Shown here piece by piece: positions 23,786 through 62,485 of a DNA stretch of 64,000 nt. The notes under the pieces were generated by a model. The model did not search any database and was not told where the DNA came from. It saw nothing but the letters and a program-made list of their open reading frames with translations. Position 1 is the first letter of the stretch. Every line of letters begins with the position of its first letter. A program made the translations under genes and the position numbers. The stretch comes from Octopus sinensis (taxonomy: Eukaryota), in assembly GCF_006345805.1 (NCBI RefSeq), contig NC_043023.1, positions 15,500,001 to 15,564,000 of the forward strand, given 5' to 3'.

Positions 23786-23905
23786 TTCACAATAGAATGA
23801 TTTGCTGCAGACATCACAGTCACATAGTTTCTCTCCAGTATGAGCAGACTTGTAATTAATTAAATAATTTCTTAAACGGAATAATTTACTGCAGATACTA
23901 CAGTG

Positions 23906-28460: not shown

Positions 28461-29459
28461 GGTAAATTTTTAATGTTTTATTATTGCTATAATTACTACT
28501 TAAAATTTTGAATTTTAAGAAAAAAATCCAAATGATGGCAAAAGATACAAAACTAAAGCTTATTTTCCAGTCGATTGCTACTTTTACGCTGTTCTGTCGT
28601 CGAACCCGTAAGTTACAGGGACGGAACGAAACGAATACAGCTTATCAGAGTGATGTTGGATGAGGATAGGGGGAAAGATGCAGGCATCAGTGTTCGAAAA
28701 CCATTGTTTGTTTGTTTATATTCCAGTAACTTAGTTGTGCAATGGAAGAGGGCGGGGGTAAAGAATACGCACACCACCCGTTTACGGTGTAAGCCTAATC
28801 CATGGGTCGCAGGAGGCGGAGAGGTCAAGCAAGCAGAGACGACAGAGCAGAGACGAGGAAGCGACAGGACGTGTCAAATTCGTAAGAGACCTCGGATCTT
28901 CGCCGAGGTAAGGCCTTTTGTATTTCTTCCTCCCGTTGCTTCTTCTGTTGTCCTCTTCATCCATCACACTACACATACATACTTGTCCTTCTCATCAAGT
29001 AAACTCTTAGCAGAAAAAAAATCAGAAAAATGCCTTTTATCACCCGCCTTCTTAAAAAGAATGGCGGTGCCCCAGCATGGCCACAGCTCGTGAGCTGAAC
29101 CTAGATGAAAATAAATAAATAAAACTAAGGGAGGTCTCTCCCGTTTTTATTTCTAATACTCTTTAAACGATTGAATTTGGATTTAATAAGATTAATATTG
29201 AATAAGACTTTGCGGGTCAGCTTTACATAATTTCTTGGGTATTGGTTAGAAAACAACCCACGGGTTTCTCACCTTAACCTTTAAAAGAAATAAACGAAGA
29301 ACGACACTACAGGTTTAAAGAGGAGATCGTAAGAGTAGCAAAAAACCTGAAAATAAGTAATCAGCATATACTTTTGTATTTTTTGACATTATTCGGGTTT
29401 TTTTCATTATAATTCACATTTCGTAAACGTAATTATAGCAATAAAAACCATCGAAAATT

Positions 29460-29655
29460 TACCACTTCAGTTTTAGCATCCGACAAATGCGTAGTAATAG
29501 GACGGATACAGTATTTAGAAGTTAGTTCGTTTCGTTGACGTTCCGTGTCGGTTTTTCTAAAGTGCCTTTAAATTATATTTCCCGCCAGATCAATCCTTTC
29601 TGTAATTAACGTTAATTCATATTAAACACTAATTTATTTATCATCACAGGTAAGA
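29460..29655 (+). promoter_or_regulatory. Putative core promoter and non-coding exon 1 of gene E
   Basis: TAGCATCCGACAAA, then Inr-like TTAGTTCGTTTCG (~29522), then AG|GTAAGA donor at 29650. One diverged copy per gene, oriented toward that gene. Confidence 0.55.
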
Positions 29656-31466
29656 TACAATACATGTTTTGTCTGTAGTAAAAGCCGATGACCCTGGTTA
29701 ATTGGAAACTCCAGACAATTGTGAAAGTTTTGAATGTTGCTAATCTGATTTCGATATTAATTCCATTCTCCGTTAAACTTCTTGGATAATGCCAAGAAAA
29801 TCTAATCTTAATTTTTACTTGGTATGTCGATGAAAAAGCACCAAATTTTTAATGTCTTTTAGGCGATGTTACGGTATAAGTACCGGATACATTTTTAAAA
29901 AGTGGGTTTTTTTTATATATGGGGGGGTTAGGGTTTCTGTTAGGGGTGGGAGAAAAGGGTTTCTGTTATAAATCATTAAAATCCTTAAAAATGTTTAAGC
30001 CGCGGCCATGCTGGGGCACCACCGCTGGAACTCATATCTTCAGAGATGTAAACAAAGTCACGTGTGTACATATACCGAAGGATCGCCACATACCCTAACC
30101 CTAACACAAACCCTAGCCCTCACAGAAACCCTAACTTTAACCCTCACCCTAACTCCCCATATATAAAAAAAACACTTTTTTGAAATGTATCTGGTACTTC
30201 CGGAAGTACACCGGTACTTATACCGTAAGATCGCCTTCTTTTATTACAGTAGACATTCCATTTGTTACTTGTGTCCATTCGAAGCTGTCTATCGCTTTAT
30301 TATAGAGGTATAACTTGCTACGTATCACTATTTGCTGTTTATTTTGTCAAAATGATTGGCTTTAATAGTTATCTCTTTTCTCTGTTTCAGTCATTTGACT
30401 GTGGCCATGCTGGAGCACCACCGTTCAGTCGAGTAAATCGACTCCAGGACTTATTCTTTGTAAGGCTAGGGTCACTTTTGTCGAACCGCTAGGTCATGGG
30501 GACGTAAACACACCAGCATCGGTCGTCCAGCGATGTTAGGGTGACAAACACAGACACATAAGCACAGACACAAACATACATATACACATATATACAACGG
30601 GCTTCTTTCCATGCTTCCTGAGATTCGCCAACACTACACCTGATTTTCTCCCCTCCATACACACGCAAGCATGTATCTGACTCATACACTGTTCACTTCC
30701 CATACATTTGTACATTACTGTATATAATTTATACGCACTTTTGACAAGTTGTGGTGCACCTGAGCACTGTATACAGTAATTTCATTATTATTATTTTAAA
30801 AGTCGTGAACACAACCTAATTTCATTAATAGACCTGTTCAGCCAGGGATGATTCCGGACTAAACAACAGTGACTTATCACATTTCTGAAGATAGTAGGAA
30901 GTTATTGTCCAATATTTTGTAGTTTAACATTTTACATAATATCTGAAGGTAAAGGAACGGAAGTCTGTGTATAGAGACTAATTATTCGGGTTAAGGTTTA
31001 TGTAAACAGTTTATTATTATGAAAATGTAGTAATATTTTTTATAGTTGAATCTCTGCTTTTCAAGTCTTTCCTATATCTTCTACTGTTTCTGTGTCATGT
31101 CAGAATATGAGATGTTAGTGGTATAAAGGAGTTTTTACATCAGATACATCATGAATATTGATCATCATTTGAAGACTAATGGAAGATATTATAAATGATA
31201 TATATAACCCTGTTTCTATTACAAATCTATGGTGAATGACTGTGAAATATTTCTTTGGAATTAATACGAACGTTTGTTTTCTTCATTGCCAGTATTTTAC
31301 ATTCTGTTTGAATTTGGAAAAATCTGTGAAGGTCTTTGTATTATCTTCAGATATTCGAGAAGATCAGATTTGCTGTAAATATAGCAGTAGAAGTATTTGA
31401 ATCAACAAAGACATTTATAAAGAAGAAAAAAAAAAAGATTTTGGTGTTGCATACTGCAGAAGAATA

Positions 31467-32099
31467 ATGAATCCGCCGGAGATGACAAAAGAAAGAGAAA
31501 AATTATCAGACCAATGTGATATCTGTAAAAAGACTTTTTCTAATACAGCAAATCTCACTGTTCACAAGTGTATTGATCCAAGTGGAAAGCAATATCGCTG
31601 TGATATCTGTGGTAGATCATTCTCTCATAACAGTAACCTTACTAAACACAAATACATTCACACAGGAGAGGAACCATATCACTGTGATATCTGTGATAAA
31701 TCCTTTTCATTAAAAAGTCATTTAATTACTCACAAACTAACACATACAGGTGAGAAGCCACATCACTGCGATATTTGTGGTAAAACATTCCCTCATAAGA
31801 ATAGCCTTACTTATCACAAATCAATTCATACAGGAGAGAAACCATATCAGTATGATATTTGTGGTAAATCATTCTCTCAAAAAGGTAACTTTGATTCTCA
31901 CAAATCAATTCATACAGGAGAGAAACCATATCACTGCAATATCTGTGGTAAATCCTTTGTATTAAGAAGTTATTTAACTGCTCATGAACGTACTCACACT
32001 GATGAGAGGCCATATCAGTGTGATATTTGTGGTAAATCATTCTCTGGAAAAAGTAACCTTACTAGACACAAATACATTCATACAGGAGAGAAATCATAG
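31467..32099 (+). CDS. C2H2 zinc-finger protein E, 210 aa, 7 fingers
   Basis: Uninterrupted [15 protein letters not shown]...HTGEKS*. One finger has Cys>Tyr (YQYDIC). Confidence 0.9.
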
Positions 32100-33184
32100 C
32101 ACTGTGATATCTGCAGTAAATCATTCTAAGTCTATTCATAAAGGAGACAAACTATGTCACTGTGATATCTGTGGTAAGTCATTCTCTTGGGAATGTGCTA
32201 TATATACTCATAAATGTATTTATACAGGAGAGAAGCCCTATCACTGTGATATCTGTGGTAAATCATTGTCTTTGGAACAACATTTAACTAATCACAAATA
32301 CATTCATACAGGAGAGAAAGCATAGCACAGTAATATCTGCAGTAAATCATTCTGTGTAAGAAAATATTTTTATCACAAATCCAGTTAGATTGGGGAGATA
32401 TTGTATCACTGTGTTCATCATCAACATCGTTTAACGTCCGCTTTCCATGCTAGCATGGGTTGGACGGTTCAACTGGGGTGTGGGAAGCCAGAAGGCTGCA
32501 CCAGGCTCCAGTCTGATCTAGCAGTGATTCTACAGCTGGATGCCCTTCTTAACGCCAACTACTCCGTGAGTCTAGTGGGTGCTTTTTACATGCCACCGGC
32601 AAAGGTGCCAGACAAGGTTCGCAAACGTCCACGTTCGGATAGTTCTCTTATGTGCCACCGGCCTTGGTATCACAGCTACAAATTCCATTGATGTTGATCG
32701 ATTATGACTTTGATTTTTGGTTTTGATATCTGTAGTAAATCATTCTCTTAGGATTATGTTGTTTAACTAATTTTAAATGCATTCATACAGGAGAGAAGAC
32801 ATATTGCTGTGTTATCTGTGCAAAATCATTCTCTTAACGTAATTTAACTAAACCTGTTTTTATTCATATTGATCAATAACAATACCAGTGATAAAATGGG
32901 GAATGAAATACAGCAATTGTATTACTTTTTTTGAGACAAATAAACTTTTTACATTTTCTTCATTTGTGTTTTCGTGTGGATATATTATTTCGACACCATT
33001 GTATCACGTTCCAGTTCCCAACGATGATCAGTTCTTCTCTGCTGGACATGCTTAGGCTATCCCACGATCTGCAGCCTATAATCTAATGAACAATATGTGT
33101 CCATAGCTTGTACTGGGTACACTACATGGAGTTTCTCCTGACATCTTTTCTACATGCCTAAAAGGGCCATCTCTGTCTTTGGTC

Positions 33185-34410
33185 TTTGCTAAATTTACTG
33201 AATGGTTTTTCAATCCAGATGTTGCTTCCATACCTGAAATTTGTTCTCTAATTTTGGTAGGGATTCAGCAATAATAACAAGGTCATCAGCTTGGAAGAGA
33301 TCCCAAGGGCAGCCAATCTTAAATTCCTCTGTTATTGCTTGCAGGACTATGATAAACAAGAGTGGGGTGAAAAACGATCCTTGGTGAACTCCTATTTTGA
33401 CACTAAAATTCATGCTATACTCATTGGTGACATTTACCTTACTGACAGCATCCCTATACATGGCTTTTGCATGTCTCACCAACCACTCATCTCTCCCTAA
33501 ACGACGATGCTGTGGTGATCTCATTCTTGCTCACAACATCATAAGCAGAAAGTGTAACCTCTCGAAAGATCTGTTCTTCACTCCTGCTCCAGAGCGTCGG
33601 CTGCAGGGTCACTCTGAAAAGCTCTATCTGTGACAATTTCATCTCAATCGATGGAGAAGGGCTTTCTCAGTCCGGGTTGCGGATCCGTGGAAAAAGTCCC
33701 TCTTGACCAGAAATGGCCTGAACACTTTGTATGACTACCCTCCCTGTACATAATTCCATGTCCCCCTACATGGCCTTGCTTTTTGCTTTTTGAGCCAAAA
33801 AATTAACTTAACTTAGCTTCTCTATTGCTCCCCAAATAATAGAGTAGGGGATTCTGTCAAAAGCTTTCTCCATGTCAACAAAATCCAAATGCAAAGATAT
33901 ATCTTTGACCAAGTACTTCTGCTTTTGCCTCACCAGGAAGATAGCATTGCTGGTGCTTCTAGTTGATACAATTCTACACCTTGATCCATGGAACTTACAT
34001 TGATATATGAGGAGACCTATTGAGTCAAGTACATCAACAACAAAAAATAAAATGGAAATTGTAGTTGTGATACCTGTGCCGGTGGCAAGTAAAAAGCACC
34101 ATCCGAACATGGCTGATGCGAGCACCACCTTGACTGGCTTCTATGCCGGTGAAAAGCACCAACCGATCATAGCCGATGCCAGCCTTGCCTGGCACCTGTG
34201 CTGGTGGCATGTAAAATGCACCCACTACACTCATGGAGTGGTTGGCATTAGGAAGGAATTTGAGATTGGCTGCCCTTGGGATCTCTTCCAAACTGATGAC
34301 CTTGTTCTTATTGCTGAATCCCTACCACAATTAGAGAACAAATTTCAGGTATGGAAGCAAGATCTGGATTGAAAAGCCATACAGTAAATTTAGCAAAGAC
34401 CAAAGACAGA
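33185..34410 (-). mobile_element. Composite RTE reverse-transcriptase / CR1 fragments
   Basis: RTE RT pieces FVDMEKAFDR (33808-34000), GVHQGS..PLLF and QADDLV (33210-33500), a CR1 3' piece (~33500-33780, +), and an inverted RT piece (~34255-34400, +). Confidence 0.8.
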
Positions 34411-34581
34411 TCCTGTCAGGGAGATGGCCCTGCTCGGCATGGAGAAAAGGGCATCCAGCTGTAGAAACACTGCCAGATCAGACTGGAGCCTGGTGCAGCC
34501 ATCTGGCTTCCCAGAGACCCGGTCAAACCGTCCAACCCATGCCATCGAGGAAAGCAGACATTAAGCGATGACGATGATGCA

Positions 34582-34790
34582 GAAACGTTAGCAGGCCGGG
34601 CAAAATGCTTTGCGGTATTTCGTCTGTCGTTACATTCTGAGTTCAAATTCCGCCAAGGTCGACTTTGCCTGTCATCCTTTTGGGGTCGATAAATAAAGTA
34701 CCAGTTTCGCACTGGGGTCGATGTAATCGACTTAATCCCTTTGTCTGTCCCCTCTATGTTTAGCCCCTTGTGTGCAGCAAAGAAATAGAT
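34582..34790 (+). mobile_element. Second SINE family (GCAGAAACGTTAGC head; GCCCCTTGTGGGTAATAAAGAAAT-type tail)
   Basis: B-box-like GAGTTCAAATTCC. Copies at ~20245-20428(-), 42305-42480(-), 43262-43443(+), 48980-49190(-). Confidence 0.8.
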
Positions 34791-36879
34791 GATGATAATG
34801 ATATAATTAATGGAAGATACAAGAATATTTATTGATCACTATAATTGCTTCAACACATCTTGCTTCGATCCTTTATGAGTGGAATATTGAAGAGTTGCTT
34901 TATGGGTATCCAACAGTGTAGATGTGTCTTTTCAGGTGATTACAAGATATATTTCATTAAAATAACGTCTTTTCTTCAAAATTTCTTCTTGTTATGCGTT
35001 TGTTTTATAATTTATTGATATTATTTGATTTACAAAACACAAGGTATTAAATGTTAAGATGGCCATTTGCACCATCCGATCATGGACGTTTGCCAGCCTC
35101 ATCTAGCACCTGTGCCGGTGGCATGTAAAAAGCACCAACCGATCATGGCTGCTGCCAGCCTCCCCTGGTACCTGTGCCGGTGGCACGTAAAGAGCATGCA
35201 CTACACTCACGGAGTGGTTGGCGTTACGAAGGGCATCCTGCCATAGAGACACTGCCAGATCAGACTGGGCCTGGTGCAGCCTTCTGGCTTCCCAGACCCC
35301 AGTCGAACCATCCAACCCATGCTAGCATGGAAAACGGACACTAAACGATGATGATGCTGTGAATGTGAGATAATGAGTTGGCACAAAAGAACTACCATTT
35401 GAGCCTTATCTATGCCAGTGCCATCTGGCTGCGCCCCCTTCCGTGCCAGTCACACTTGAAAAACACCCACTACACTCTTGTTGTTAAGCAACAAGACAGG
35501 TAAGGGAAATAAAAAATCTTTGGTCGTCTTGTTGCAGTCGAGGGCGCTTTCCATTGACGCACGACACCACTGGGAGGTGGCCCTTGAAGTCGCTGGAAAT
35601 GGAGATCTCCAGGTCCAAATTCTTGGACGGCCCCGCTACACTCTCAGAGTGGTTGGCATTAGGAAGGGCACCCAGCTGTAGAAACTCTGCCAGATCAGAT
35701 TGGAATCTGGTGCAGCCATCTGGCTCACCAGCCCTCAGTCAAAATCGTCCAACCCATGCCAGTATGGAAAGTGGATGTTAAATGATGATGATGAACCATT
35801 TACATTTTTACAATAGATATTTATAGGGAAGTCCCATGTTGAATAATTCTAACCAATTGCATAGTAAGCTACAGCAATTTTAGAACGGGACAACATTGCA
35901 TAGTGCCAAAGATCCCGGCAATGACATCATGCTTCAGGACCAGCTTCTGCAACAGCCTTGGTTTCAAGGGCCCACAGCTTTTTAATATTCTCCCAAAGAG
36001 TCTGAGGAACTTGCACAAAGTAGATGTAGTGATTTTTAAATCAAAGCTGGACATCTTCCTGTCGAGAGTCCCAGATGAACCTACCTCACGGCCAGAGGTA
36101 CAAATGAGAGTAGCTATATCAAACTCCATTCTTCACCAAGTGCCACATATTAGAGGAAGTTCTTCGTAATAACATTGTAGTACAAAACGGCGGTGCATCA
36201 GTATGGCTGCAGCTCTGAGCTGAATCAAGTAAAAAAAAAAAAAATTGGTACCAACAGATAATCAACATATTTAACAATGAAGACATTGCATGCTTTCACT
36301 TGAAATGTGACATATCCCCACATTTCGCCTATGAAATTTAATTTGTCACCCGTCATGCTACAAAGAAATTTTGCTGTTTTTCTCAACATAGGCGCAGGAG
36401 TGGCTGTGTGGTAAGTAGCTTGCTTATGAACCATAAGGTTCCGGGTTCAGCCCCACTGCATGGCATCTTGGTCAAGTGTCTTCTACTATAGCCTTGGGTT
36501 GACCAAAGCCTTGTGAGTGGGTTTGGTAGACGGAAACTGAAAGAAGCCCGTCGTATATATATATATATATATATATATGCGTGTTTGTGTTTGTCCCCCT
36601 AGCATTGCTTGACAACCGATGCTGGTGTGTTTATGTCCCCGTCACTTAGTGGTTTGGCAAAAGAGACCGATATCATAAGTACTGGGCTTACAAAAGAATA
36701 AGTCCTGGGGTCGATTTGCTTGATTAAAGGCGGTAAGTTTCTTGCTTCTGAACCATAAGGTTCCGGGTTCAGTCCCACTACGTGGCACCTTGGGCAAGTG
36801 TCTTCTACTATAGCCTCGGGCCGACCGAAACCTTGTAAGTGGATTTGGTAGACAAAAACTGAAAGAAGCCCATCATATA

Positions 36880-36887
36880 TATGTATG

Positions 36888-36926
<39 letters not shown>
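36880..36926. repeat. (TA)n(TG)n microsatellite within SINE
   Basis: Read directly; similar tracts at ~18445, ~36555 and ~58790. Confidence 0.85.
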
Positions 36927-36927
<1 letters not shown>

Positions 36928-39494
36928 AAATTTTGTATGTCTATATTTCTCCCCCCAACATCGCTTGACTATTGAAGCTGGTGCGTTTACGTCCCTGTAA
37001 CTTAGCAGTTCGGCAAAAGTGACTGATAGAATAAGTCCTGGGGTCTATTTTCTTGACTAAAGGCGGTGCTCCAACATGCCCACTGTCAAATGACTGAAGC
37101 ATGTAGAAGAGATAGGTTTCCCTAATTTCTTCCATATACAGTCAACTCTCGCTACTTTGCCACCCTGCGGGACTGAGCCAGAGTGGCATAGTACCGAGGG
37201 TCTGTTATCTAAACACTACATAACCAAAAATTTACTGAACATACGAATAAAAATTCATAGGGTAGGAAGTAAGGCCAATAAGAATTTCAATGCAATGGTA
37301 AAAAGAAGACATCCATGTTTATTAAGTTCAAATTGCTTTTAGTTAATCCTGAAGCTCTCAAAAATTGTCGGCTGACGCATCTACTTTCGGGCGATTTCAT
37401 TCATTTCATTGTCTAGCCTATCATACGCCTGTATGACCCTGGGTTCTCCGCTGCTCTTCTGCTGCATAAACTTTCGGATAGTGCTCCATGCTCTCTGGGC
37501 ATCTGCAAAACTGGCATAGTAGGGAGAGTTGACTGTATCCATATTTATTATTGAAATATCACTTCCAATGTCTAACTGAAGTTTAATATGTATTCCAATC
37601 ATTTTTACATGTACGAATTTTGTTTCTGTTCAGAGCCCTCTAGGATCTTTAATGGTTGATCTTCAGAATTTAGTTCTGCAGTGTGAATTTCTGTATATTC
37701 AGTGTTGTAAGGCCTTTTACCACAAAAGACACCTGAACATCTCAGGTGTAAATTCTTTGAGTTTAAAAATATTCACACATTCTGTTAATTGTTCCTGCGT
37801 ATGTGATAAAATCACCATCCTCTTTTTTCATTATATTCCAAAACACCATCCAAGTGTTAGAGAAGTTTTATCACCGAATATGTTAGACAGTAATTCCATT
37901 GTTTCTTTAAACAAATTTCATTGAGTTTTTTTGGGGTAATATGAAATTAAAGTAATGTTCATGCTCAGATGGGGCTCATTTATGTCATAATAACCTTACT
38001 TTTTCTGTGTCTGACCATGTCTTACAATCTTCCTTAAAAATTACCTGCTGTAGTACAATGCAACAGTTATACCGTCCTCTGGGTTACAACTGGATTCATT
38101 GAGTCCAAAACGGGGTCTGGCAAAAATGTACTTCCCTCATTTTTGGACTTCTTTGAATAAAGCCCCAATAATTGTTGTTGTTGCTGCCTTTGTCGTTGAT
38201 TTTGCAACAGTTTTAAAGAAGCTAATTAGTCTTCCATGATTTAACAATTTTGTATCACAAAAATTTGTTAACTGACCTGCAAGAGCTTCGAAACCCTCAT
38301 CGCCAGATGTTGTAACATAATTGTTCCGTACAATAAATAAGATAACCAGAAAATTGTAACAACAATCTAATGAACAAACAAATCTTTTAAGAACCAACAT
38401 TTATTATTCCTTAGGAAGTAAACCAAGCGACACCTTCCGACTTCACTTGACTCTGAACCGCAAACCCACTCAGATCGTTACTATTTATACTTTACTCGGA
38501 CCAGTCTATCTCTCACAAGGGGACATGGTAACTCTCATCACAACAGGTGCCATTCTAACCAGATGCCCATGATAAATCCCTGCTTGGTGTCTGGTAAGAA
38601 CAAGACCATGAAAACCTGCTCTACAGAATGATTTAGCAAAAAATAAGTATGATGATAATCCCTTGCATGGGTTGAGCGGGGATGTGTTTGAACCATAGGT
38701 AGAGTGGGGCATTAGGCTCTTGAAAAATATTTCCCACTCTACACCCAAAACTGTGACAAACAGCAATAAGCCTCCAGCTAGTGCCAGAATATGTGGGTAG
38801 TAGCACAAAGGGTGCAGATCCTGGGATCCCTGAGTGTGTCCAGCAGAGGATAACTGATCATGGCTGGGAACTGGAGTGTAATACATTTGTGTCAAAATAA
38901 TATATCCTCAAGAAAACAGACCAAATTAATATAATCAATATTGTTTGAATAAAAAACACAAATCGTAATTAGTGAGTTGATGCAAATGAGGAAAATGTGA
39001 AAAATGAATTTATTTTGTAAAAAGTAATACATTTGCTGTATTTTATTCAGCAGGACATCTGTTTTATCATTGATATTGTTATTGATCAATATGAATAAGT
39101 ATATGTTTAGTTAAGGTAGATTATTGAGAGAATGATTTAGCACAGATTACACAGTCATAAGAATCTTCTCCTGTATGAATATGTTTGTGTTTAGTTTATT
39201 ATTTCTCTCTATGAAAGAATGACTTGTCACAGATGTCACAGTGATAGGATTTCTCTCCTGTATGAATGTATTTGTGATGAGTTCAATATTGTTCCACAGA
39301 GAATGATTTACCTCAGATATCACAGCAATAGAGTTTCTCTCCTGTATGAATACATTATAAGTATATACAGCATATTCCTGAGAGAATGATTTGCTGCAGA
39401 CATCACAGTCACATAGTTTCTATCCAGTATGAGCAGACTTGTAATTAATTAAATATTTTCTTAAACGGAATAATTTACTGCAGATACCACAGTG

Positions 39495-42586: not shown

Positions 42587-42721
42587 TCTTACCTGTTATG
42601 ATAAATAAATCAGTGCTAAATGTCAATTAACGCAAACCACACCAAAAAAGCCATTCAGCGGGAAACGTAATTGAAAGAAAGCTCAAAAAATAGACATGGA
42701 ATATTGACGAAACGAACTGAA
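42587..42721 (-). promoter_or_regulatory. Putative exon-1 module of gene F
   Basis: Reverse strand: TCAGTTCGTTTCG at 42721 and AG|GTAAGA at 42592. Near-identical inverted copy of the G module. Confidence 0.55.
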
Positions 42722-45779: not shown

Positions 45780-46225
45780 CACTGTAGTATCTGCAGTAAA
45801 TCATTCCGTTTAAGAAAATATTTAATTAATTACAAGTCTGCTCACACTGGAGAGAAACTATGTGACTGTGATGTCTGCAGCAAATCATTCTCTCAGGAAT
45901 ATGCTGTATATACTTATAAACGTATTCATACAGAAGAGAAACTCTATTGCTGTGATATCTGAGGTAAATCATTCTCTGTGGAACAATATTGAACTCATCA
46001 CAAATACATTCATACAGGAGAGAAATCATATCACTGTGACATCTGGGACAAGTCATTCTTTCATAGAGAGAAATAATAAACTAAACACAAACATATTCAT
46101 ACAGGAGAAGATTCTGATGACTGTAATCTGTGCTAAATCATTCTCTCAATAATCTACCTTAACTAAACATATACTTATTCATATTGATCAATAACAATAT
46201 CATTGATAAAACCGATGTCCTGCTG

Positions 46226-46231
46226 AATAAA
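46226..46231 (+). terminator. Candidate poly(A) signal of gene G, conserved in paralog tails
   Basis: GAATAAAATAC..CAA.TGTATTACTTTTT recurs in the tails of A (329-334, minus), B (~5330), D (~21790), F (~39045) and H (~51840). E has AATGAA. Confidence 0.45.
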
Positions 46232-47329
46232 ATACTGCAAATGTATTACTTTTTACAAAATAAATTCATTTTTCACATTTTCCTCATTTGCATCAACTCA
46301 CTAATTACGATTTGTGTTTTTTATTCAAACAATATTGATTATATTAATTTGCTCTGTTTTCTTGTGGATATATTATTTTGACACAAATGTATTACACTCC
46401 AGTTCCCAGCCATGATCAGTTATCCTCTGCTGGACACACTCAGGGATCCCAGGATCTGCACCCTTTGTGCTACTGCCCACATATTCTGGCACTAGCTGGA
46501 GGCTTATTGCTGTTTGTCACAGTTTTGGGTGCAGAGTGGGAAGTATTTTTCAAGAGCCTAATGCCCCACTCTACCTATGGTTCAAGCACATCCCTGCTCA
46601 ACCCATGCAAGTGATTATCATCATACTTATTTTTTGCTAAATCATTCTGTAGAGCAGGTTTTCATGGTCTTGTTCTTACCAGACACCAAGCAGGGATTTA
46701 TGATGGGCATCTGGTTAGAATGGCACCTGTTGTGTTGAGAGTAGACTGGTCCGAGTAAAGTATAAATAGTAACGATCTGAGTGAGTTTGCGGTTCAGAGT
46801 CAAGTGAAGTCGGAAGGTGTCGCTTGGTTTACTTCCTAAGGAATATTGAATGTTGGTTCGTAAAAGATTTGTTAGTTCATTAGATTGTTGTTACAATTTT
46901 CTGGTTATCTTATTTATTGTACGGAACAATTATGTTACAACATCTGGCGATGAGGGTTTCGAAGCTCTTGCAGGTCAGTTAACAAATTTTTGTGATACAA
47001 AATTGTTAAATCATGGAAGACTAATTAGCTTCTATAAAACTGTTGCAAAATCAACGACAAAGGCAGCAACAACAACAATTATTGGAGCTTTATTCAAAGA
47101 AGTCCAAAAATGAGGGAAGTACATTTTTGCCAGACGCTGTTTTGGACTCTATGAATCCAGTTATAACCCAGAGGACGGTATAACTTGCATTGTACTACAG
47201 CAGGTAATTTTTAAGGAAGATTGTAAGACATGGTCAGACACAGAAAAAGTAAGGTTATTATGACATAAATGAGCCCCATCTGAGTATGAACATTATTTTA
47301 ATTTCATATTACCCAAACAAACTCAATGA

Positions 47330-47735
47330 AATTTTTTTAAAGAAACAATAGAATTACTGTCTAACATATTCGGTGATAAAACTTCTCTAACACTTGGATG
47401 GTGTTTTGGAATATAATGAAAAAAGAGGATGGTGATTTTATCACATACGCAGGAACAATTAACAGAATGTGTGAATATTTTTAAACTCAAAGAATTTACA
47501 CCTGAGATGTTCAGGTGTCTTCTTTTGGTAAAAGGCCTTACAACAACTGAATATACAGAAATTCACACTGCAGAACTAAATTCTGAAGATCAACCATTAA
47601 AGATCCTAGAGGGCTCTCAACAGAAACAAAATTCGTACACGTAAAAATGATTGGAATACATATTAAACTTCAGTTCGATACTGGAAGTGATATTTCAATA
47701 ATAAATATGGATACATGGAAGAAGATAGGGCAACC
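47330..47735 (+). mobile_element. Gypsy-type LTR retroelement gag/protease remnant (inverted copy ~37520-37950)
   Basis: DFITYAGTINRMCE...FRCLLLVKGL followed by IKLQFDTGSDISIIN..TWKKIGQP (aspartic protease DTG motif). Confidence 0.7.
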
Positions 47736-49329
47736 TGTCTATTTTACATGTTTCAGTCATTTGACAGTGGCCATGCTGGAGCAGTGCCTTTAGTCGAGCA
47801 AATAAACCCCAGGACTTATTCTTTGTAAGCCTAGTACTTATTCTATTTTCTTTTTGCCAAACTGCTATGTGACAGGGGTGTAAACACACTAGCATCGGTT
47901 GTCAAGCAATGTTGGGGGGACAAACACAGACACACAAGCATACATATATATGATAGGCTTCTTTCAGTTTCCGTCTACCAAATCCACTCACAAGGCTTTG
48001 GTCGACCCGAAGCTATAGTAGAAGACATTGAACCAATGTGCCACGTTGTGGGACTGAACCCAGAACCTTATGGTTCATAAGCAAGCTACTTTCCACACAG
48101 CCATGTTGAGAAAAACAGCAAAATTTCTTTGTAGCATGACGGGTGACAAATTAAATTTCATAGGCGAAATGTGGGGATATGTCACATTTCCAGTGAAAGC
48201 ATGCAAGGAGAATGTCTTCATCATTAAAAATGTTGATTATCTGTTTGGTACCTTTTTTTTTTTCTTGCTTCAGCTCAGAGCTGTGGCCCTGCTGATGCAC
48301 CGCCGTTTTGTACTACACTTTATTACGAAGAACTTCCTCTAATGTGTGGCACTTGGTGAAGAATGGAGTTTGATATAGCTACTCTCATTTGCACCTCTGG
48401 CCGTGAGGTAGGTTCATCTGGGTTGGATGGTTCAACTGGGGTCTGGGAAGCCAGAAGGCTGCATCAGGCCCAGTCTGATCTGGCAGTGTTTCTACGGCTG
48501 GATGCCCTTCCTGACGCCAACCACTCCATGAGTGTAGTGTGTGATTTTTATGTGCCACCGGCACAGGTGCCAGATGAGGCTGGCAAATGGCCATGATCGG
48601 ATGGTGCCTTTTACATGCCACCTGCACAGGTGCCAGACGAGGCTGGCAAACATCCACGATCGACTGGTGCTTTTTACGTGCCACCGGCACAAAGGACCAG
48701 AGGAGGCTGGCAAACGGCCATCTAAACATTTAATACCTTGCGTTTTGTAAATCAAATAATATCAACAAATTATAAAACAAACAAATAGCAAGAAGAATTT
48801 TTGCAGAACAGAGGTTATTTTAATGAAATATATCTTGTAATCACCTGAAAAGATACATCTACACTGTTGGCTACTCATAAAGCAACTCTTCAATATTCCA
48901 CTCATAAAGATATGTTGAAACAATTGTAGTGATCAATAAATATTCTTGTATCTTCCATTAATTATATCATCATCATCATCTATTTCTTTGCTGCCCACAA
49001 GGGGCTAAACGTAGAGGGGACAGACAAAGGGATTAAGTCGATTACATCGACCACAGTGCAAAACTGGTACTTTATTTATCGACCCCAAAAGGATGACAGG
49101 CAAAGTCGACCTTGGTGGAATTTGAACTCAGAACGTAACGACAGACGAAATACCGCAAAGCATTTCGCCCGGCCTGCTAACGTTTCTGCCTCATCATCAT
49201 CGTTTAATGTCTGCTTTCCTCGATGGCATGGGTTGGACGGTTTGACCGGGTCTCTTGGAAGCCAGATGGCTGCACCAGGCTCCAGTCTGATCTGGCAGTG
49301 TTTCTACAGCTGGATGCCTTTTTTCTCCA

Positions 49330-50637
49330 TGCCAAGCAGGGCCATCTCCCTGACAGGATCTGTCTTTGGTCTTTGCTAAATTTACTGTATGGTTTTTCAA
49401 TCCAGATCTTGCTTCCATACCTGAAATTTGTTCTCTAATTGTGGTAGGGATTCAGCAATAAGAACAAGGTCATCAGCTTGGAAGAGATCCCAAGGGCAGC
49501 CAATCTTAAATTCCTTCCTAATGCCAACCACTCCGTGAGTGTAGTGGGTGCATTTTACATGCCAACAGCACAGGTGCCAGGCAAGGCTGGCAACGGCTAT
49601 GATCGGTTGGTGCTTTTCACCGGCATAGAAGCCAGTCAAGGTGTTGCTGGCATCAGTCATGTTTGGATGGTGCTTTTTACTTGCCACCGGCACAGGTATC
49701 ATCATCATCATCATCATCATTTAGCGTCCGTTTTCCATGCTAGCATGGGTTGGACTATCACAACTATAATTTCCATTTGATTTTTGATGTTGATGTACTT
49801 GACTCAATAGGTCTCCTCATATATAAATGTAAGTTACATGGATCAAGGTGTAGAATTGTATCAACTAGAAGCACCAGCAATGCTATCTTCCTGGTGAGGC
49901 AAAAGCAGAAGTACTTGGTCAAAGATATATCTTTGCATTTGGATTTTGTTGACATGGAGAAAGCTTTTGACAGAGTCCCCATCTCTATTATTTGGGGAGC
50001 AATAGAGAAGCTAAGTTAAGTTAATTTTTTGGCTCAAAAAGCAAAAAGCAAGGCCATGTAGGGGGACATGGAGTTATGTACAGGGAGGGTGGTCATACAA
50101 AGAGTTCAGGCCGTTTCTGGTCAAGAGAGACTTTGAACCGAGCGGTCGTCGGCATCTTCACTATCTCATCCGGCAGCTTATTCCATGGATCCGCAACCCG
50201 GACTGAGAAAGCCCCTCTCCTTCGATTGAGATGAAATTGTCGTAGATAGAGTTTTTCAGAGTGACCCCGCAGCCGACGCTCTGGAGCAGGAGTGAAGAAC
50301 AGCTCTTTCGAGAGGTTACACTTTCCGCTTATGATGTTGTGAGCGAGAATGAGATCACCACAGCATCATCGTTTAGGGAGAGATGAGTGGTTGGTGAGAC
50401 ATGTAAAAGCCATGTATAGGGATGCTGTCAGTAAGGTAAACGTCACCAATGAGTATAGCATGAATTTTAGTGTCAAAATAGGAGTCCACCAAGGATCGTT
50501 TTTCACCCCACTCTTGTTTATCATAGTCCTGCAAGCAATAACAGAGGAATTTAAGATTGGCTGCCCTTGGGATCTCTTCCAAGCTGATGACCTTGTTATT
50601 ATTGCTGAATCACTACCAGAATTAGAGAACAAATTTC
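49330..50637 (+). mobile_element. Inverted duplicate of the composite RTE/CR1 block
   Basis: ORFs 49750..50019 and 50349..50654 mirror 33808..34128 and 33210..33524. The CR1 piece reads RGHSEKL...FSVRV..WNKLP. Confidence 0.8.
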
Positions 50638-51425
50638 GGATCTTTTGCTTTTGAACGGCACTTTGTAACATAATTTCTAGTTAACTAAACACTTTAAAAC
50701 TTTGTATACTGGTAGAATGTGTTTATAAAACATCATTTTTTCTTGGCTTTATTGAGAAAATCCTTATGTTTGTAAGATATTTCATCTGAAAATTCGAGTA
50801 TTTTGGCAATTTTAACCAATCGCTGGAGTCCATTTAGGTAAACATTCCGTGCTGTATGAATATGTCCCTCGTTTAAGAAACAGATTGGGTTTATTTACAT
50901 TTGTGAAGAAAAAAAGATACCCTTCCCACACTCCTAAGACTAACTCTCACCCTAAATCTAAAATAGATTGAAATGCAATAGATCGATACTAGGGCCATAA
51001 TTATGGGTGACATTTTCATTTGACACCGCTAGAAAAAAATCCCACTTTCTGTAGCGGTGTCGTATGAAATTGTCATCCATAGTTATGGCCCTAGTATCGA
51101 TCTATTGAATTTCAATCTATTTTAGATTTAGGGTTAGGGGTGGGGGAATGGTATCTTTTTTTTCTTCACAAATGTAAAGAAACCCAATCTGTTTCTTAAA
51201 GGAGGGACATATTCATTATGCACAGAATGTTATTTACCTAAATGGAGAGCAGTGATTGGTTAAAATTGCCGAAATGCTCGAAATATCTTACAACCTACAG
51301 AATTTTCTCAATAAAGCCAAGAAAAAATGATGTTTTATAAACACATTCTAATAGTATACGAAGTTTAAAAGTGCTTAGTTAACTAGAAATTGTGTTGAAA
51401 AGCACCGTTCAAAAGGAAAAGATCC
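50638..51425. mobile_element. MITE with GGATCTTTT(C/G)CTTTTGAACGG TIRs and 8-bp TSD CAAATTTC
   Basis: TSD at 50630-50637 and 51426-51433. The empty site GAGAACAAATTTCAGGTATGG is present in the sister copies near 33240 and 34340. Confidence 0.9.
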
Positions 51426-52418
51426 CAAATTTCAGGTATGGAAGCAAGATCTGGATTGAAAAACCATACAGTAAATTTAGCAAAGACCAAAGACAGATCC
51501 TGTTAGGGAGATGGCCCAGCTCGGCATGTAGAAAAGATGTCAGGAGAAACTCCATGTAGTGTACCCAGTACAAGATATGGACACATATTGTTCATTAGAT
51601 TATAGGCTGCAGATCGTGGGATAGCCTAAGCATGTCCAGCAGAGAAGAACTGATCATCGTTGGGAACTGGAATGTGATACAATGGTGTCGGAATAATATA
51701 TCCACAAGAAAACAGCAAATTAATGTAATTAAAATTGTTTGAATGAAAACCACACACATTATAATTAATGAGTTGATGCAAATGAGGAAAATGTAAAAAA
51801 TTTATTTGTCTGAAAAAAAGTAATACAATTGCTGTATTTTATTCCCCATTTTATCACTGGTATTGTTATTGATCAATATCAATAAATACAGGTTTAGTTA
51901 AATTACGTTAAGAGAATTATTTTGCACAGATAACACAGCAAGATGTCTTCTCTCCTGTATGAATGCATTTAAAATTAGTTAAACAACATAATCCTAAGAG
52001 AATGATTTACTACAGATATCAAAACCAAAAATCAAAATCATAATCGATCAACATCAATGGAATTTGAACTTGTGATACCAGTGCCGGTGGCACAAAAGTG
52101 AACCATCCGAATGTGGCCGTTTGCCAGCCCCGTCTGGCACCTTTGCCGGTGGCACGTAAAAAGCACCCACTACACTCACGGAGTGGTTGGCGTTAGGAAG
52201 GGCATCCAGCTGTAGAAACACTGCCAGATCAGACTGGAGCCTGGTGCAGCCTTCTGGCTTCCCACACCCCAGTTGAACCGTCCAACCCATGCTAGCATGG
52301 AAAGTGGATGCTAAACGATGATGATGATCACAGCGATATAATATCTGCCCAATCTAACTGGATTTTTGATAAAAAATTTTCTTACGCAGAATGACTTACT
52401 GCAGATATTACAGTGCTA

Positions 52419-52571
<153 letters not shown>

Positions 52572-52723
52572 TTATGAGTGGACTTATGATTAATCAAATA
52601 ATATCTTACACAGAATGATTTACTGCAGATATCACAGTGCTATGATTTCTCTCCTGTATGAATGTATTTGTGTCTATTAAAGTTACTTTTATGAGAGAAT
52701 GATTTACCACAGATATCACAGTG

Positions 52724-53356
52724 CTATGATTTCTCTCCTGTATGAATGTATTTGTGTCTAGTAAGGTTACTTTTATGAGAGAATGATTTATCACAGATAT
52801 CACACTGATATGGCCTTTCATTAGTGTGAGTAAGTTCATGAGCAGTTAAATTACTTCTCACTACAAAGGATTTACCACAGATATTGCAGTGATATGGTTT
52901 CTCTCCTGTATGAATTGATTTGTGATAAGTAAGTCTATTCTTATGAGAGAATGATTTACCACAAATATTGCAGTGATATGGCTTCTCACCTGTATGTGTA
53001 AGTTTGTGAGTAATTAAATTACGTTTTAATGAAAAGGATTTATCACAGATATCACACTGATATGGTTTCTCTCCTGTATGAATGTATTTGTGACAAGTAA
53101 GGATACTCCTATTAGAGAATGATTTACCACAAATACCACATTGATATGGTTTCTCTCCTGTATGAATGTATTTGTGATGAGTAAGATTATCTTTCTTAGA
53201 GAATGATTTACCACAGATATCACAGTGAAATTGCTTTCCACTTGGATCGATACACTTGTGAACAGTGAGATTTGCTGTATTAGAAAAAGTCTTTTTACAG
53301 ATATCACATTGGTCTGATAATTTTTCTCTTTCTCTTGTCATCTCCGGTGGATTCAT
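52724..53356 (-). CDS. C2H2 zinc-finger protein H, 210 aa, 7 fingers
   Basis: ORF 52724..53488; start MNPPEMTREREK at 53356. The frame is intact, but its putative exon 1 is disrupted (see findings). Confidence 0.85.
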   Translation of the reverse strand: MNPPEMTREREKLSDQCDICKKTFSNTANLTVHKCIDPSGKQFHCDICGKSFSKKDNLTHHKYIHTGEKPYQCGICGKSFSNRSILTCHKYIHTGEKPYQCDICDKSFSLKRNLITHKLTHTGEKPYHCNICGKSFSHKNRLTYHKSIHTGEKPYHCNICGKSFVVRSNLTAHELTHTNERPYQCDICDKSFSHKSNLTRHKYIHTGEKS

Positions 53357-54780
53357 TATTCTTCTGCAGTATACGACCCCAAAATATATTTTTCTTTTCT
53401 TCTTTATAAATGTCTTTGTTGATTCAAATACTTCTACTGCTATATTTACAGCAAATCTGATCTTCTCGAATATCTGAAGATAATACAAAGACCTTCACAG
53501 ATTTTTCCAAATTCAAACAGAATGTAAAATACTGGCAATGAAGAAAACAAACGTTCGTATTAATTCCAAAGAAATATTTCACAGTTATTCACCATAGATT
53601 TGTAATAGAAACAGGGTTATATATATTATTTATAATATCTTCCATTAGTCTTCAAAGGATGATCAATATTCATGACGTATCTGATGTAAAAACTCCTTTA
53701 TACCACTAACATCTCATATTCTGAAATGACACAGAAACAGTAGAAGATATAGGAAAGACTTAAAAAGCAGAGATTCAACTACAAAAAATATTACTACATT
53801 TTCATAATAATAAACTGTTTATATAAACCTTAACCCGAATAATTAGTCTCTATACACAGACTCTTGTTCCTTTGCCTTCAGATATTATGTAAAATGTTAA
53901 ACTACAAAATATTGGACAATAACTTCCTACTATCTTCAGAAATGTGATAAGTTACTGTTGTTTAGCCCGGAATCATCCCTGGCTGATCAGGTCTATTAAT
54001 GAAATTAGGTTGTGTTCACGACTTTTAAAATAATAATAATGAAATTACTGTATACAGTGCTCAGGTGCACCAGAACTTGTCAAAAGTGCGTATAAATTAT
54101 ATACAGCAACGTACAAATGTATGGGAAGTGAACAGTGTATGAGTCAGATAGATGCTTGCGTGTGTATGGAGGGGCGAAAATCAGGTGTAGTGTTGGCGAA
54201 TCTCAGGAAGCATAGAAAGAAGCCCGTCGTATATATGTGTATATGTATGTGTTTATGTGTCTGTGTTTGTCACCCTAACATCGCTGGACAACCGATGCTG
54301 GTGTGTTTACGTCCCCGTAACTTAGCGGTTCGGCTAAAGAGACCGAAGAGAATAAATCCTAGGCTTACAAAGAATAAGTCCTGGGGTCGATTTGCTCGAC
54401 TGAAAGGTGGTGCTCCAGCATGGCCACAGTCAAATGACTGAAACAAGTAAAAGAGATAACTATTAAAGCCAATCATTTTGACAAAATAAACAGCAAATAG
54501 TGATACGTAGCAAGTTATACCTCTATAATAAAGTGATAGACAGCTTCGAATGGACACAAGTAACAAATGGAATGTCTACTGTAATAAAAGAAGGCGATCT
54601 TATGGTATAAGTACCGGTGTACTTCCGGAAGTACCAGATACATTTCAAAAAAGTGTTTTTTTTATATATGGAGGGTTAGGTTTTAAGTTAGGGTTTGTGT
54701 TAGGGTTAGGGTATGTGGCGATCCTTCGGTATATGTACACACGTGACTTTGTTTACATTTCTGAAGATATGAGTTCCAGC

Positions 54781-57040
54781 TCTTCTACTTCTTGTGGAAG
54801 GGCGGGAAACCACTTGTGAAACGCTCTACTTGCTGTCAACAACCGTTAAAGGGTGGCTAGGGATGCCTTGGCTGATGATGCGCAGACATGCGCTGAGGTT
54901 AAGACATCTGTGGCTCTACCTGGATGGTGAACGGGTGTGGTCTTCGCTAGCAAAACTGATATTTCCCAAGTTCACTAGTTTCGGTGGATGGGAAACCTGG
55001 CTGAATCGTAGATTGAAAGTTGGTACTTGGTACACGGAGTGTCGCAAGGCTCTCCTGCTATTCCGTCGCTCGGGCAACGCCTGCGGTGGGGGTTCCACCA
55101 CATTCTTCTATAGAGGGTTGGTAGAGGCGGAATGTGAAGATACCTTGGGGGAAACCCTAGGTCTCGACGATAATCAGCTGGCCAGTCTGTTCCGACGTAC
55201 GTTCGAGCCGAGGACACTGGACAACTTCCAGAAGTCTCTGGCATGGCAATGCTACAGAGGAGCTCTACCTGTTCGGGATAAACTCGCAAGGCACGGTGGC
55301 CAAGACAGTCCGATATGTCCAAGATGCGGGCGGGATAGGGAAACCGTCCCGCACGCTATTGTTCATTGTCCGGACGTGTCTGAGGTGTGGGTTTATGCCG
55401 AACACCTGTTGTCAGGTACACAAAGAGTACAGCTGTCGACTGAGTCGATTACAAAAATTGACCCACCGGATTTCCTCGTGAATGAAGGTAAGTTTCGTTT
55501 TCTCGTTGTAGTAGCAATTGCGAAAGAGGTGATATGGAAGACGAGAATGAAAGGTGTACAGTCAGGCAAGTTCATCTCCGGCCCTGGTTTGATGAAGTAT
55601 TTCATCTTTCACCTGAAAAGGAAGATAGGGCTGGAGAGAATATGCCTGACTAGGAGAGTGTATGAAGAACGATGGAAGGATGTAGCACGAAAGTTGCGAG
55701 TGAAAGATACAACATAAATGTAATACCAAGCGCAACCAAAAGTATCAGTGGGGAGGCGGGGCTCGTGGGGTCCGAGCTAAACCCGCACCCACTCCACCCG
55801 TAATGTCTTCCGGTCTGTCCCATCATTCGATTTCTGTCCATTTATTGTAATTCATGAAAATTTTAAAATTCGATTTATTGTAAAAACCCATTCGTGTGTC
55901 TGACCCCATCATCAGATTGTATTGTCCCGTCTATGTTCGCCCCTTGTGGGTAATAATAAAACAACATGCGCTGAGGTTAAGACATCTGTGGCTCTACCTG
56001 GATGGTGAACGGGTGTGGTCTTCGCTAGCAAAACTGATGTTTCCCAAGTTCACTAGTTTCGGTGGATGGGAAACCTGGCTGAATCGTAGATCGAAAGTTG
56101 GTACTTGGTACACGGAGTGTCGCAAGGCTCTCCTGCTATTCCGTCGCTCGGGCAACGCCTGCGGTGGGGGTTCCACCACATTCTTCTATAGAGGGTTGGT
56201 AGAGGCGGAATGTGAAGATACCTTGGGGGAAACCCTAGGTCTCGACGATAATCAGCTGGCCAGTCTGTTCCGACGTACGTTCGAGCCGAGGACACTGGAC
56301 AACTTCCAGAAGTCTCTGGCATGGCAATGCTACAGAGGAGCTCTACCTGTTCGGGATAAACTCGCAAGGCACGGTGGCCAAGACAGTCCGATATGTCCAA
56401 GATGCGGGCGGGATAGGGAAACCGTCCCGCACGCTATTGTTCATTGTCTGGACGTGTCTGAGGTGTGGGTTTATGCCGAACAGCTGTTGTCAGGTACACG
56501 AAGAGTACAGCTGTCGACTGAGTCGATTACAAAAATTGACCCACCGGATTTCCTCGTGAATGAAGGTAAGTTTCGTTTTCTCGTTGTAGTAGCGATTGCG
56601 AAAGAGGTGATATGGAAGACGAGAATGAAAGGTGTACAGTCAGGCAAGTTCATCTCCGGCCCTGTTTTGATGAAGTATTTCATCTTTCACCTGAAAAGGA
56701 AGATAGGGCTGGAGAGAATATGCCTGACTAGGAGAGTGTATGAAGAACGATGGAAGGATGTAGCACGAAAGTTGCGAGTGAAAGATACAACATAAATGTA
56801 ATACCAAGCGCAACCAAAAGTATCAGTGGGGAGACGGGGCTCGTGGGGTCCAAGCTAAACCCGCACCCACTCCACCCGTAATGTCTTCCGGTCTGTCCCA
56901 TCATTCGATTTCTGCCCATTTATTGTAATTCATGAAAATTTTTAAATTCGATTTATTGTAAAAACCCATTCGTGTGTCTGACCCCATCATCAGATTGTAT
57001 TGTCCCATCTATGTTCGCCCCTTGTGGGTAATAATAAAAC
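54781..57040 (+). mobile_element. L1/Tx1-clade LINE 3' fragment, tandemly duplicated (period 1078 bp)
   Basis: F.FLWKG...GGLGMP motif and zf-RVT-like CPRCGRDRETVPHAIVHC..VW. The units ~54885-55962 and ~55963-57040 differ at about a dozen positions by eye. Confidence 0.85.
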
Positions 57041-57120
57041 AAAACGAACTAATCTCTAAATATTGTATCCATCCTATAACTACGCATTTGTCGGATGCTA
57101 AAACTGAAGTGGTAAATTTT
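57041..57120 (-). promoter_or_regulatory. Truncated exon-1 module of gene H
   Basis: Inverted copy of the E module, cut just after TTAGTTCGTTT by the LINE 3' end at 57040. Confidence 0.5.
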
Positions 57121-57859
57121 TAATGGTTTTTATTGCTATAATTACGTTTTCGAAATGTGAATTATAATGAAAAAACCCCGAATAATGGCAAAAAATACAA
57201 AAGTATATGCTGATTACTTATTTTCAGGTTTTTTGCTACTCTTACGATCTCCTCTTTAAACCTGTAGTGTCGTTCTTCGTTTATTTCTTTTTAAGGTTAA
57301 GGTGAGAAACCCGTGGGTTGTTTTCTAACCAATACCCAAGAAATTATTTTTCTCTTAGCTTTATTGAGAAAATCCTACATTTTGTAAGATATTTGTTGTT
57401 TTTTATTTCTTCAATTTCTGCAATTTCAACTAATAAATGACGTCTATTGAGGTGAAAACATTCTGTGCCGTATGAATATGTCCCTCGTTTAAGAAACAGA
57501 TTGGGTTTATTTACATTTCTGAAGAAAAAAAAGATAACCTTTCCTCAACTCCTAACCCTAAAACAGATTGAAATGCAATAGATCGATACTAGGGTTATAA
57601 TTATGGGTGACAATTTCATATGATACCGCTAGAAAAAACTGCCGTTCAAACGGAAAACATTCGATGGGAGTAAGACACGCGTGTCTGTTCCCCACACCCA
57701 CCACTATCTGACAAGTCGTGTTGCTTTCTTTGACATTGTGGTTCGGTACGCGGAGGATGTAAAAGTAGCAATAAAAATGTCAGCTTCTAGCTTTGTATCA
57801 TTTGTTATTATTTGCATTTTTTCTTACAATTCACATTTTCAAAAATTTACCACTTTACT

Positions 57860-60845: not shown

Positions 60846-62485
<1,640 letters not shown>

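Follow-up and report, generated by a model that had tools for sequence, protein, structure and literature searches.

A palindrome in an Octopus sinensis zinc-finger gene cluster is an inverted duplication of a two-gene block

The stretch of Octopus sinensis DNA analyzed here (contig NC_043023.1, positions 15,500,001 to 15,564,000; hereafter the window) is 64 kb long, with 37% G+C and zero Ns, and holds nine C2H2 zinc-finger genes, labelled A to I. Four of them lie in a large palindrome, with genes E and F in the left arm and G and H in the right. We are highly confident that a tail-to-tail two-gene block has genuinely been duplicated here in inverted orientation. The two arms meet at a pair of gene start modules, separated by a short spacer that is present once and belongs to gene G. 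Fold-back or template switching at a 15-nt box in these modules is our tentative candidate for the mechanism, with a probability that falls a little short of even. All statements about the arms are drawn from this single sequence, through self-BLAST of the window, a global arm alignment, a tile-by-tile search, three-way site counts, Pfam and ARAGORN.

Results

Two collinear inverted arms flank a single-copy spacer

A preliminary description of the window had proposed a palindrome at 29228-57347, with ~14-kb arms and a ~310-bp spacer centred around 42875. Self-BLAST bears this out. A collinear inverted chain (E = 0.0 or nearly) joins 29227-42720 to 57347-43029, giving a left arm of 13,494 bp (29227-42720), a right arm of 14,319 bp (43029-57347) and a measured centre at ~42,872. 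The spacer, or loop, between the arms (42721-43028, + strand) measures 308 bp and corresponds to the upstream part of the G start module. When the window is compared with itself and arm identity is followed along it, the anti-diagonal is present, though interrupted.

From the outer end inward, the aligned blocks are 29227-29536 with 57347-57038 (96.1% identity), 30024-32127 with 54780-52696 (91.4%), 32962-33243 with 51720-51426 (92%), 33236-33696 with 50637-50177 (96.3%), 33693-34072 with 50134-49756 (96.3%), 34068-35070 with 49701-48710 (94.7%), 35069-35319 with 48670-48419 (88.5%), 36070-36731 with 48422-47786 (86.6%), 37534-40658 with 47715-44626 (89.4% overall, 97.5% over 37534-39573) and 42119-42720 with 43617-43029 (94.5%). 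Blocks of at least 85% identity account for ~9.0 kb (~65%) of each arm, and another ~1.65 kb, consisting of zinc-finger array, aligns no better than paralogues do (77-80%). The global arm alignment falls into three identity classes, namely unique non-coding DNA at 96-97.5%, repeat-dense DNA at 87-90% and finger arrays at 77-80%; in the same alignment, no arm-to-arm homology was seen between 41225-42028 and 43789-43671.

Divergence is even along the arms, with Kimura two-parameter (K2P) distances of 0.026-0.043: 0.040 at the outer end, 0.027 in the E/H 5′ region, 0.036, 0.036 and 0.043 in three intergenic segments, 0.026 in the F/G 3′ flank and 0.038 at the centre. The innermost arms (42118-42720 and 43030-43615) had been called nearly identical; they are homologous, but at 94.5% identity with indels (K2P 0.038) this was overstated. 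No palindromic junction occurs at the outer ends, 29227 and 57347.

Some of the mirrored DNA is found nowhere else in the window. This is the case for the intergenic segments 33236-35070 and 37534-38047 with their mirrors, and for ~500 bp upstream of E and H (30024-30520). Since this intergenic and upstream DNA is exclusive to the two arms, a two-gene block was copied, and not merely single genes.

The arms carry private insertions

Three arm-specific events had been named in the preliminary description, a miniature inverted-repeat transposable element (MITE) at 50638, a long interspersed nuclear element (LINE) at 54781 and a replacement of the 5′ part of F; all three are confirmed. The MITE, a hAT-like non-autonomous DNA element in the right arm (50638-51433), ends in inverted repeats of ~55 bp and is flanked by an 8-bp target-site duplication, CAAATTTC; its empty site is seen in the left arm at 33235/33236. 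Also in the right arm, LINE 3′ fragments (54781-57037, + strand; Pfam zf-RVT) replace the counterpart of 29537-30023. They include two head-to-tail copies of ~1.08 kb (54886-55964 and 55964-57042) that are ~99% identical, and the 3′ end of the LINE, which carries a (TAA)n-like tail, runs into gene H inside its promoter box.

The right arm, for its part, lacks three features of the left: a Tc1/mariner-like element of 399 bp (37135-37533; terminal inverted repeats beginning TACAGTCAACTCTC, empty site 47715), a 754-bp segment containing short interspersed repeats (35316-36069) with a 4-nt microhomology, CCCA, at its edges, and a 334-bp local duplication of a short repeat (36694-37027). A decayed reverse-transcriptase remnant at 33213-34140 (- strand) scores below the RVT_1 threshold, yet is mirrored at 49744-50651 (+ strand); because it is present in both arms, it is older than the duplication. 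Genes and repeats had been described as mirroring each other in order, and the collinear inverted chain agrees with this. The repeat labels did not fare as well: only the weak mirrored RVT_1 remnants stand behind 'Gypsy', and the putative short interspersed nuclear elements (SINEs) have no tRNA-like heads detectable by ARAGORN.

The hAT-like family, recognized by its GGATCTTTTSCTTTTGAMCGG termini and 8-bp target-site duplication, is found at 11176-11338, 19071-19588, 57343-57643 and 63555-63807 in addition to 50638-51433. At 57348, directly beyond the outer limit of the right arm, lies a fragment of this family.

The arms meet at gene start modules

A pair of diverged, inverted start modules lies between the two genes of each head-to-head pair in the window (B-C, D-E, F-G and H-I). 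Each module has one copy of a 15-nt box, GTTCGTTTCGTTGAC, which gives eight matches against 1.1 expected (among them those at 10559-10573, 11657-11671, 28384-28398, 29525-29539, 42703-42717, 43032-43046 and 57915-57929). A donor-like site, CAG/GTAAGA, lies ~95 nt downstream of the box and is conserved across all eight aligned modules. Judging from these motifs, a start module is probably a core promoter with a non-coding first exon.

The E module (29227-29775, + strand) has its box at 29525-29539, followed by the donor-like site. The F module (42390-42720, - strand) ends 4 nt upstream of the box at 42703-42717, and the core of the G module (43029-43360, + strand) has its box at 43032-43046; from 4 nt before the box outward, the F and G modules are 97.6% identical. 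Only the upstream part of the H module is left (57038-57347, - strand), its box being cut after TTCGTTTTGTT and its exon-1 and donor part missing. Between pairs, module identity is 57-78%. The modules of D and E, like those of H and I, are only ~64% identical, and the head-to-head layout is therefore older than the palindromes.

To which of the two central genes the spacer belongs can be read from its alignments. The spacer and G module together (42697-43266) align with the D upstream region (28725-28149) in inverted orientation only, and 42834-43279 aligns directly with the E upstream region (29318-29775). The orientation of the alignment to D makes the spacer continuous with G, and the spacer is thus G's own upstream DNA; because it belongs to G, F is without an upstream region of its own. 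Two hallmarks of a fold-back, adjacent inverted copies and a single-copy spacer continuous with one of them, are found at this junction, and it is the single-copy, asymmetric spacer that gives it the anatomy of a fold-back or strand switch.

The D module has a decayed inverted box at 28705-28725, 308 nt from the D box, which is placed at the homologous position by the homology of its flanks and matches at 16/21 nt, with two of the differences being CpG to CpA; scored alone, it does no better than shuffled sequences. No inverted copy of the box was seen in the C, E and I modules. We rejected the idea that every module had a pre-existing inverted box, as the trace occurs in D only and is not significant by shuffling. 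The idea that the start modules are a foldback transposon was also rejected: every gene has exactly one, which invariably lies on the side where the two genes of a pair face each other, and it has a conserved donor-like site.

A second palindrome has its inner edges at the same box

Genes B and C form a smaller palindrome (7010-15231), with arms running from 10573 to 7010 and from 11657 to 15231. Its non-coding arms (10573 to 8111 and 11657 to 14130) are 96-99% identical and its finger arrays 79-84%, and homology stops near 7010/15231. The high-identity arms start exactly at the first T of the box, and the upstream region typical of the family is kept in C and not in B. The inner edges of the F-G and B-C palindromes thus fall within 4 nt of each other at the box, though their modules are only ~61% alike. 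A third break inside the box is that of the LINE fragment truncating the H module.

The B-C spacer (10574-11656; 1,083 bp) is a composite of three pieces: an old fragment of a finger exon, an element of 163 bp that has terminal inverted repeats, and the C upstream region. The orphan 5′ fragment of a zinc-finger exon in this spacer (10957-11174, + strand) encodes ~2.5 fingers. The existence of the B-C palindrome supports the view that inverted duplication recurs in the cluster.

Gene F has been overwritten, and the right arm looks to be decaying

By N-terminus and flanks, the genes fall into three types: T1 (A, E and H), T2 (D, G and the 3′ end of F) and T3 (B, C and the 5′ part of F, more distantly I). 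The mixed nature of F is due to a 2.55-kb B/C-like patch (39574-42124, - strand) that replaces the T2-type coding region and 5′ flank. Identity of the patch to B and C is 94-97% for the 5′ flank and 85-88% for the array. For comparison, G is 95-97.5% identical to D in the 5′ flank, 87-95% in the finger array and 95-98% in the 3′ flank. At nucleotide level the right end of the patch reads CTACAACG followed directly by AAAATTTTAGG, with 5 nt, CAACG (42119-42124), common to both parents, and an 81-bp D/G-type remnant (42119-42199; 91% to 26164-26240) comes next inward. T2-type sequence on both sides makes the patch the result of conversion or a double exchange, not of a single crossover. An origin of F from one unequal crossover between adjoining T2 and T3 genes was rejected on the same ground, the patch being flanked by T2-type sequence at both ends.

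The genes of the right arm have fared worse. The reading frame of G is interrupted by a stop after codon 230 and shifts near its 3′ end, and from its sequence G is probably a pseudogene. H has lost part of its promoter/first-exon module to the LINE fragment. The E and H open reading frames (ORFs) end at the same stop. Taken together, the right arm looks to be decaying.

In every paralogue pair, the finger arrays are 77-90% identical and their own flanks and introns 96-99% (e.g. 7010-8110 vs 14131-15231, and 39574-41224 vs 43790-45542). This gap suggests rapid array turnover or diversifying selection.

Each gene type is present three times

The tile-by-tile search found a third copy of each half of the duplicated block. 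The 3′ flanks of F and G are common to D (20814-22122), and the E/H gene region is common to A. The D block, a third F/G unit (20814-26244, - strand), is direct to F and inverted to G; the A block, a third E/H unit (1-3211, - strand), runs off the left edge of the window. The 3′ flank of D has a private insertion of 1.67 kb (22123-23793), with a 7-nt deletion at the site, that is not in F or G. With the B/C-like part of F counted, each gene type is thus present three times at ~3% divergence (A/E/H, D/F-3′/G and B/C/F-5′). These threefold sets could reflect a burst, a triplication or steady-state conversion, and they are the main reason why the palindrome should not be treated as an isolated event.

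Gene content of the window and comparison with other sequences

All nine genes have a single-exon finger array with an 84-bp period, and the features of a C2H2 zinc-finger cluster, i.e. tandem fingers, TGEKP-type linkers, one exon and neighbouring genes, are all present. The ORFs are those of A (1562-2398, - strand, T1), B (6222-8196, -, T3), C (14045-15167, +, T3), D (23906-25537, -, T2), E (31467-32099, +, T1, 210 amino acids), F (39495-40814, -, 439 amino acids, intact, with T2-type 3′ end and 3′ flank and a B/C-like remainder), H (52724-53488, -, T1) and I (60822-62015, +, a distant T3); the array of G (44233-45700, +, T2 and D-like) has an interrupted frame. Pfam found zf-C2H2 and zf-H2C2_2 in 17 stretches of D. 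Eight of the nine genes stand in head-to-head pairs, two of which are palindromic.

A Helitron-like remnant (16500-20800) with a PIF1 helicase ORF (17339-18370; Pfam) lies between C and D, and the D copy of the T2 unit stops at its edge, at 20814. The top named relatives of this helicase ORF are from Octopus bimaculoides (69-82%). Among named invertebrate matches, zinc-finger identity is highest to O. vulgaris and O. sinensis (57-58%), with certain vertebrate matches locally equal or higher. Protein look-ups for an exact match to D, for homologues of A and for a subfamily-specific N-terminus gave a nearest relative at ~60% identity and none that was identical or near-identical. Two further loci from O. 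vulgaris and O. sinensis (L001 and L002) have only dispersed short repeats (89-95%) and generic finger arrays in common with the window. The O. sinensis locus L002 (CM016862.1, 9400-36500) is unrelated and unlike the window: its four arrays are all direct, and it has no multi-kilobase inverted repeat.

Discussion

A model for the origin of the palindrome

The account that we favour, and consider moderately probable as a whole, is a duplication joined within a T2 start module and followed by private changes, against a background of bursts or exchange. The ancestral unit would have been ~13.5 kb long, made up of a start module, a T1 gene, transposon-rich intergenic DNA, a T2 gene and the other start module. 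A copy would have been set in reverse directly beside the original, giving the order E> <F followed by G> <H, with the join falling within the start module of the T2 gene and G retaining its full ~310-bp upstream region as the spacer. A nascent or resected strand may have used a short inverted homology around the box to fold back on itself or to switch template, and may then have copied the G-H block outward. As the arms diverged by ~3%, they would have acquired their private changes: transposon insertions in each arm, the stop codon in G, and the LINE fragment that removed the first-exon module of H. A gene-conversion-like patch of 2.55 kb from a B/C relative would have overwritten the coding region and 5′ flank of F. 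The event may have been part of a duplication burst or of a continuing exchange that also gave rise to A, D and the smaller B-C palindrome.

The preliminary description had gone further, suggesting a fold-back or inverted-duplication mode of cluster growth that automatically creates head-to-head pairs. The inversion of a two-gene block, its even divergence, the asymmetric spacer and the recurrence in B-C all agree with this. On the other hand, D-E and H-I are head-to-head without being palindromic, growth is doubtful, and the fold-back itself is deduced from anatomy.

Several observations weigh against our account. About 35% of either arm is not aligned at 85% identity or above. The inverted microhomology that a fold-back would have used at the F-G junction cannot be reconstructed, the only trace of a seed being the decayed box of D. 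Nor are the arms each other's exclusive relatives. In a count that leaves out the first alignment window, where A homology ends, private changes number 129 in E, 64 in H and 37 in A (roughly 49, 40 and 18 without the finger array), making A the nearest relative of both E and H, and E and H the most distant pair. For D, F and G the corresponding counts (25, 17 and 21) describe a star, so that the palindrome cannot be shown to be a single event, separate from the others and later than them. The 3′ flank of A is still collinear with that of H at the very start of the window (1-291 with 51401-51720, 97%), so that the entire block may be present a third time further left. As a separate point, the premature stop in G and the loss of the promoter and first-exon module in H make it doubtful that the duplication amounts to 'growth' of the cluster.

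Alternative explanations

Could the palindrome instead be old, with F-G an ancient pair, arms homogenized by gene conversion and a ~3% divergence that marks a steady state rather than an age? Conversion is clearly at work in the cluster, as seen in the F patch, and the presence of three gene types in three copies each at ~3%, whatever their position or orientation, speaks for homogenization or a burst. The D module, 30% diverged from G, also has its inverted-box trace at the homologous place, and the junction may thus predate the arms. Against this, 13 kb of arm, 4.5 kb of it transposon debris, has diverged evenly and shows no patchwork of 100% tracts; many private insertions are still unconverted; and divergence is much greater in the finger arrays than in the DNA that flanks them. 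The near-100% arm identity expected of a palindrome maintained by conversion is not seen (K2P 0.026-0.043, private insertions kept), and an identity of 96-97% is well under that reported for sex-chromosome palindromes of this kind. We therefore judge this explanation to be improbable. Slightly less credible still is a two-step origin, in which a direct tandem duplication of the E-F block was followed by inversion via the oppositely oriented start modules that flank it. Two events are required, and the E-type and F-type modules, at only ~65-68% identity, would make a poor substrate for homologous recombination. The G module is not an E-type/F-type chimera: its upstream part is of T2 type, and the sequence that begins with the box is 97.6% F-like. 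What this scenario does explain is the location of all three boundaries (29227, 42720/43029 and 57347) inside start modules, inverted pairs of which occur at every head-to-head junction, and direct tandem duplication has been reported for octopod C2H2 genes (PMC9795677) and is seen in O. sinensis locus L002.

An inverted triplication, by origin-dependent inverted-repeat amplification (ODIRA) or a triplication-inversion (TRP/INV) event, would have A and an unseen partner as the first copy, E-F as the inverted middle copy and G-H as the third. The orientations of the T1 genes (A -, E +, H -), their star-like divergence and the collinearity of the A 3′ flank with H at the window start (97%) fit this scheme, which also predicts palindromic junctions at short inverted repeats (PMC10766186). 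However, three contiguous copies with the middle one inverted are not what is found: 26 kb with B, C, the Helitron remnant and D separates A from E, the homology of A ends at 3211 with no module and no palindromic A-E junction, and D has the wrong position and orientation for a third T2 copy. Only one palindromic junction of the unit (F-G) is visible, and we give the triplication little chance. Least probable of all, and very unlikely in our opinion, is an error of assembly, through a chimeric fold-back read or the joining of two haplotypes in inverted orientation. Long-read assembly is known to produce false palindromes, and an artefact of this type would have near-identical arms and no biological spacer. 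The arms instead differ by ~3.3% substitutions, five private insertions or indels of 300 bp or more, with transposons that have target-site duplications, and a 2.55-kb replaced tract, around an asymmetric 308-bp spacer; the window has zero Ns. The preliminary description was thus right that arm-specific insertions argue against a chimeric read. As for haplotypes, divergence is equal within the three-copy sets, not all members of which can be haplotypes, and a heterozygosity of 3% would be unusually high for an octopus.

Comparison with known systems

Inverted segmental duplications and palindromes with multi-copy genes are already well known, and as a single locus the octopus structure, which we continue to read as an inverted duplication of the E-F block, is an ordinary case. 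Primate X and Y palindromes reportedly have arms that are >99.9% identical through continuing conversion and have been conserved for tens of millions of years. The octopus palindrome resembles them in having inverted arms of tens of kilobases, multi-copy genes, a short spacer and exchange between paralogues; it differs in its lower arm identity (96-97%), in the private insertions that it still has and in the decay of two of its four genes.

Human fold-back inverted duplications have a single-copy spacer at every sequenced junction, from 766 bp to 70 kb, and inverted homology of 2-8 bp or ~300 bp at its edge (Hermetz et al. 2014, PMC3907307). The octopus case has the same adjacent inverted copies and a short asymmetric spacer continuous with one copy, at a junction where inverted homology is plausible. 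However, the human rearrangements are megabase-scale, terminal and deletion-linked, with a dicentric intermediate, whereas that of the octopus spans 14 kb, has an interstitial position and is fixed; none of the human spacers is as short as the 308 bp of the octopus spacer, and the octopus junction homology is not reconstructable. ODIRA creates palindromic junctions by a replication-type strand switch at short inverted repeats (Brewer et al. 2015, 2024; PMC4689423, PMC10766186). Its interstitial location, its palindromic junction with a small loop and the three copies per gene type are all matched here, but the three octopus copies are non-contiguous, with one palindromic junction of the unit.

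In its dense many-finger genes, one-exon arrays, recent duplicates, fast-evolving arrays and many transposons, the window resembles cephalopod C2H2 and mammalian KRAB zinc-finger clusters. In papers on the cephalopod C2H2 expansion, the mode of growth is tandem duplication, and neither palindromes nor the orientation of the genes are described (PMC12513265, PMC9795677, PMC10547256). The window departs from these accounts in that eight of its nine genes stand in head-to-head pairs and two of the pairs are palindromic. What is new here is the conserved start module at every gene, the identity of the spacer as the G upstream region, and the edge of a second palindrome at the same 15-nt box.

Implications for cluster evolution

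The junction at the promoter box that is common to both palindromes is the sole element that could take this locus beyond the known kind. The box might be a sequence-specified fold-back hotspot, with repeated inverted duplications having built both F-G and B-C in a self-propagating mode of cluster growth in octopods. We think this unlikely as matters stand, and offer it as a lead rather than a result; if true, every event would make a new head-to-head pair with one common upstream region.

Cephalopod C2H2 zinc-finger genes are among the largest lineage-specific expansions known, and their growth has been described as tandem duplication. Read nucleotide by nucleotide, the window adds inverted duplication, patch-wise gene conversion and rapid pseudogenization to the processes that shape such a cluster. 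If the junction at the box were to be found genome-wide, it would point to a site-preferred mechanism, and the idea that promoter architecture steers the growth of a gene family would become testable.

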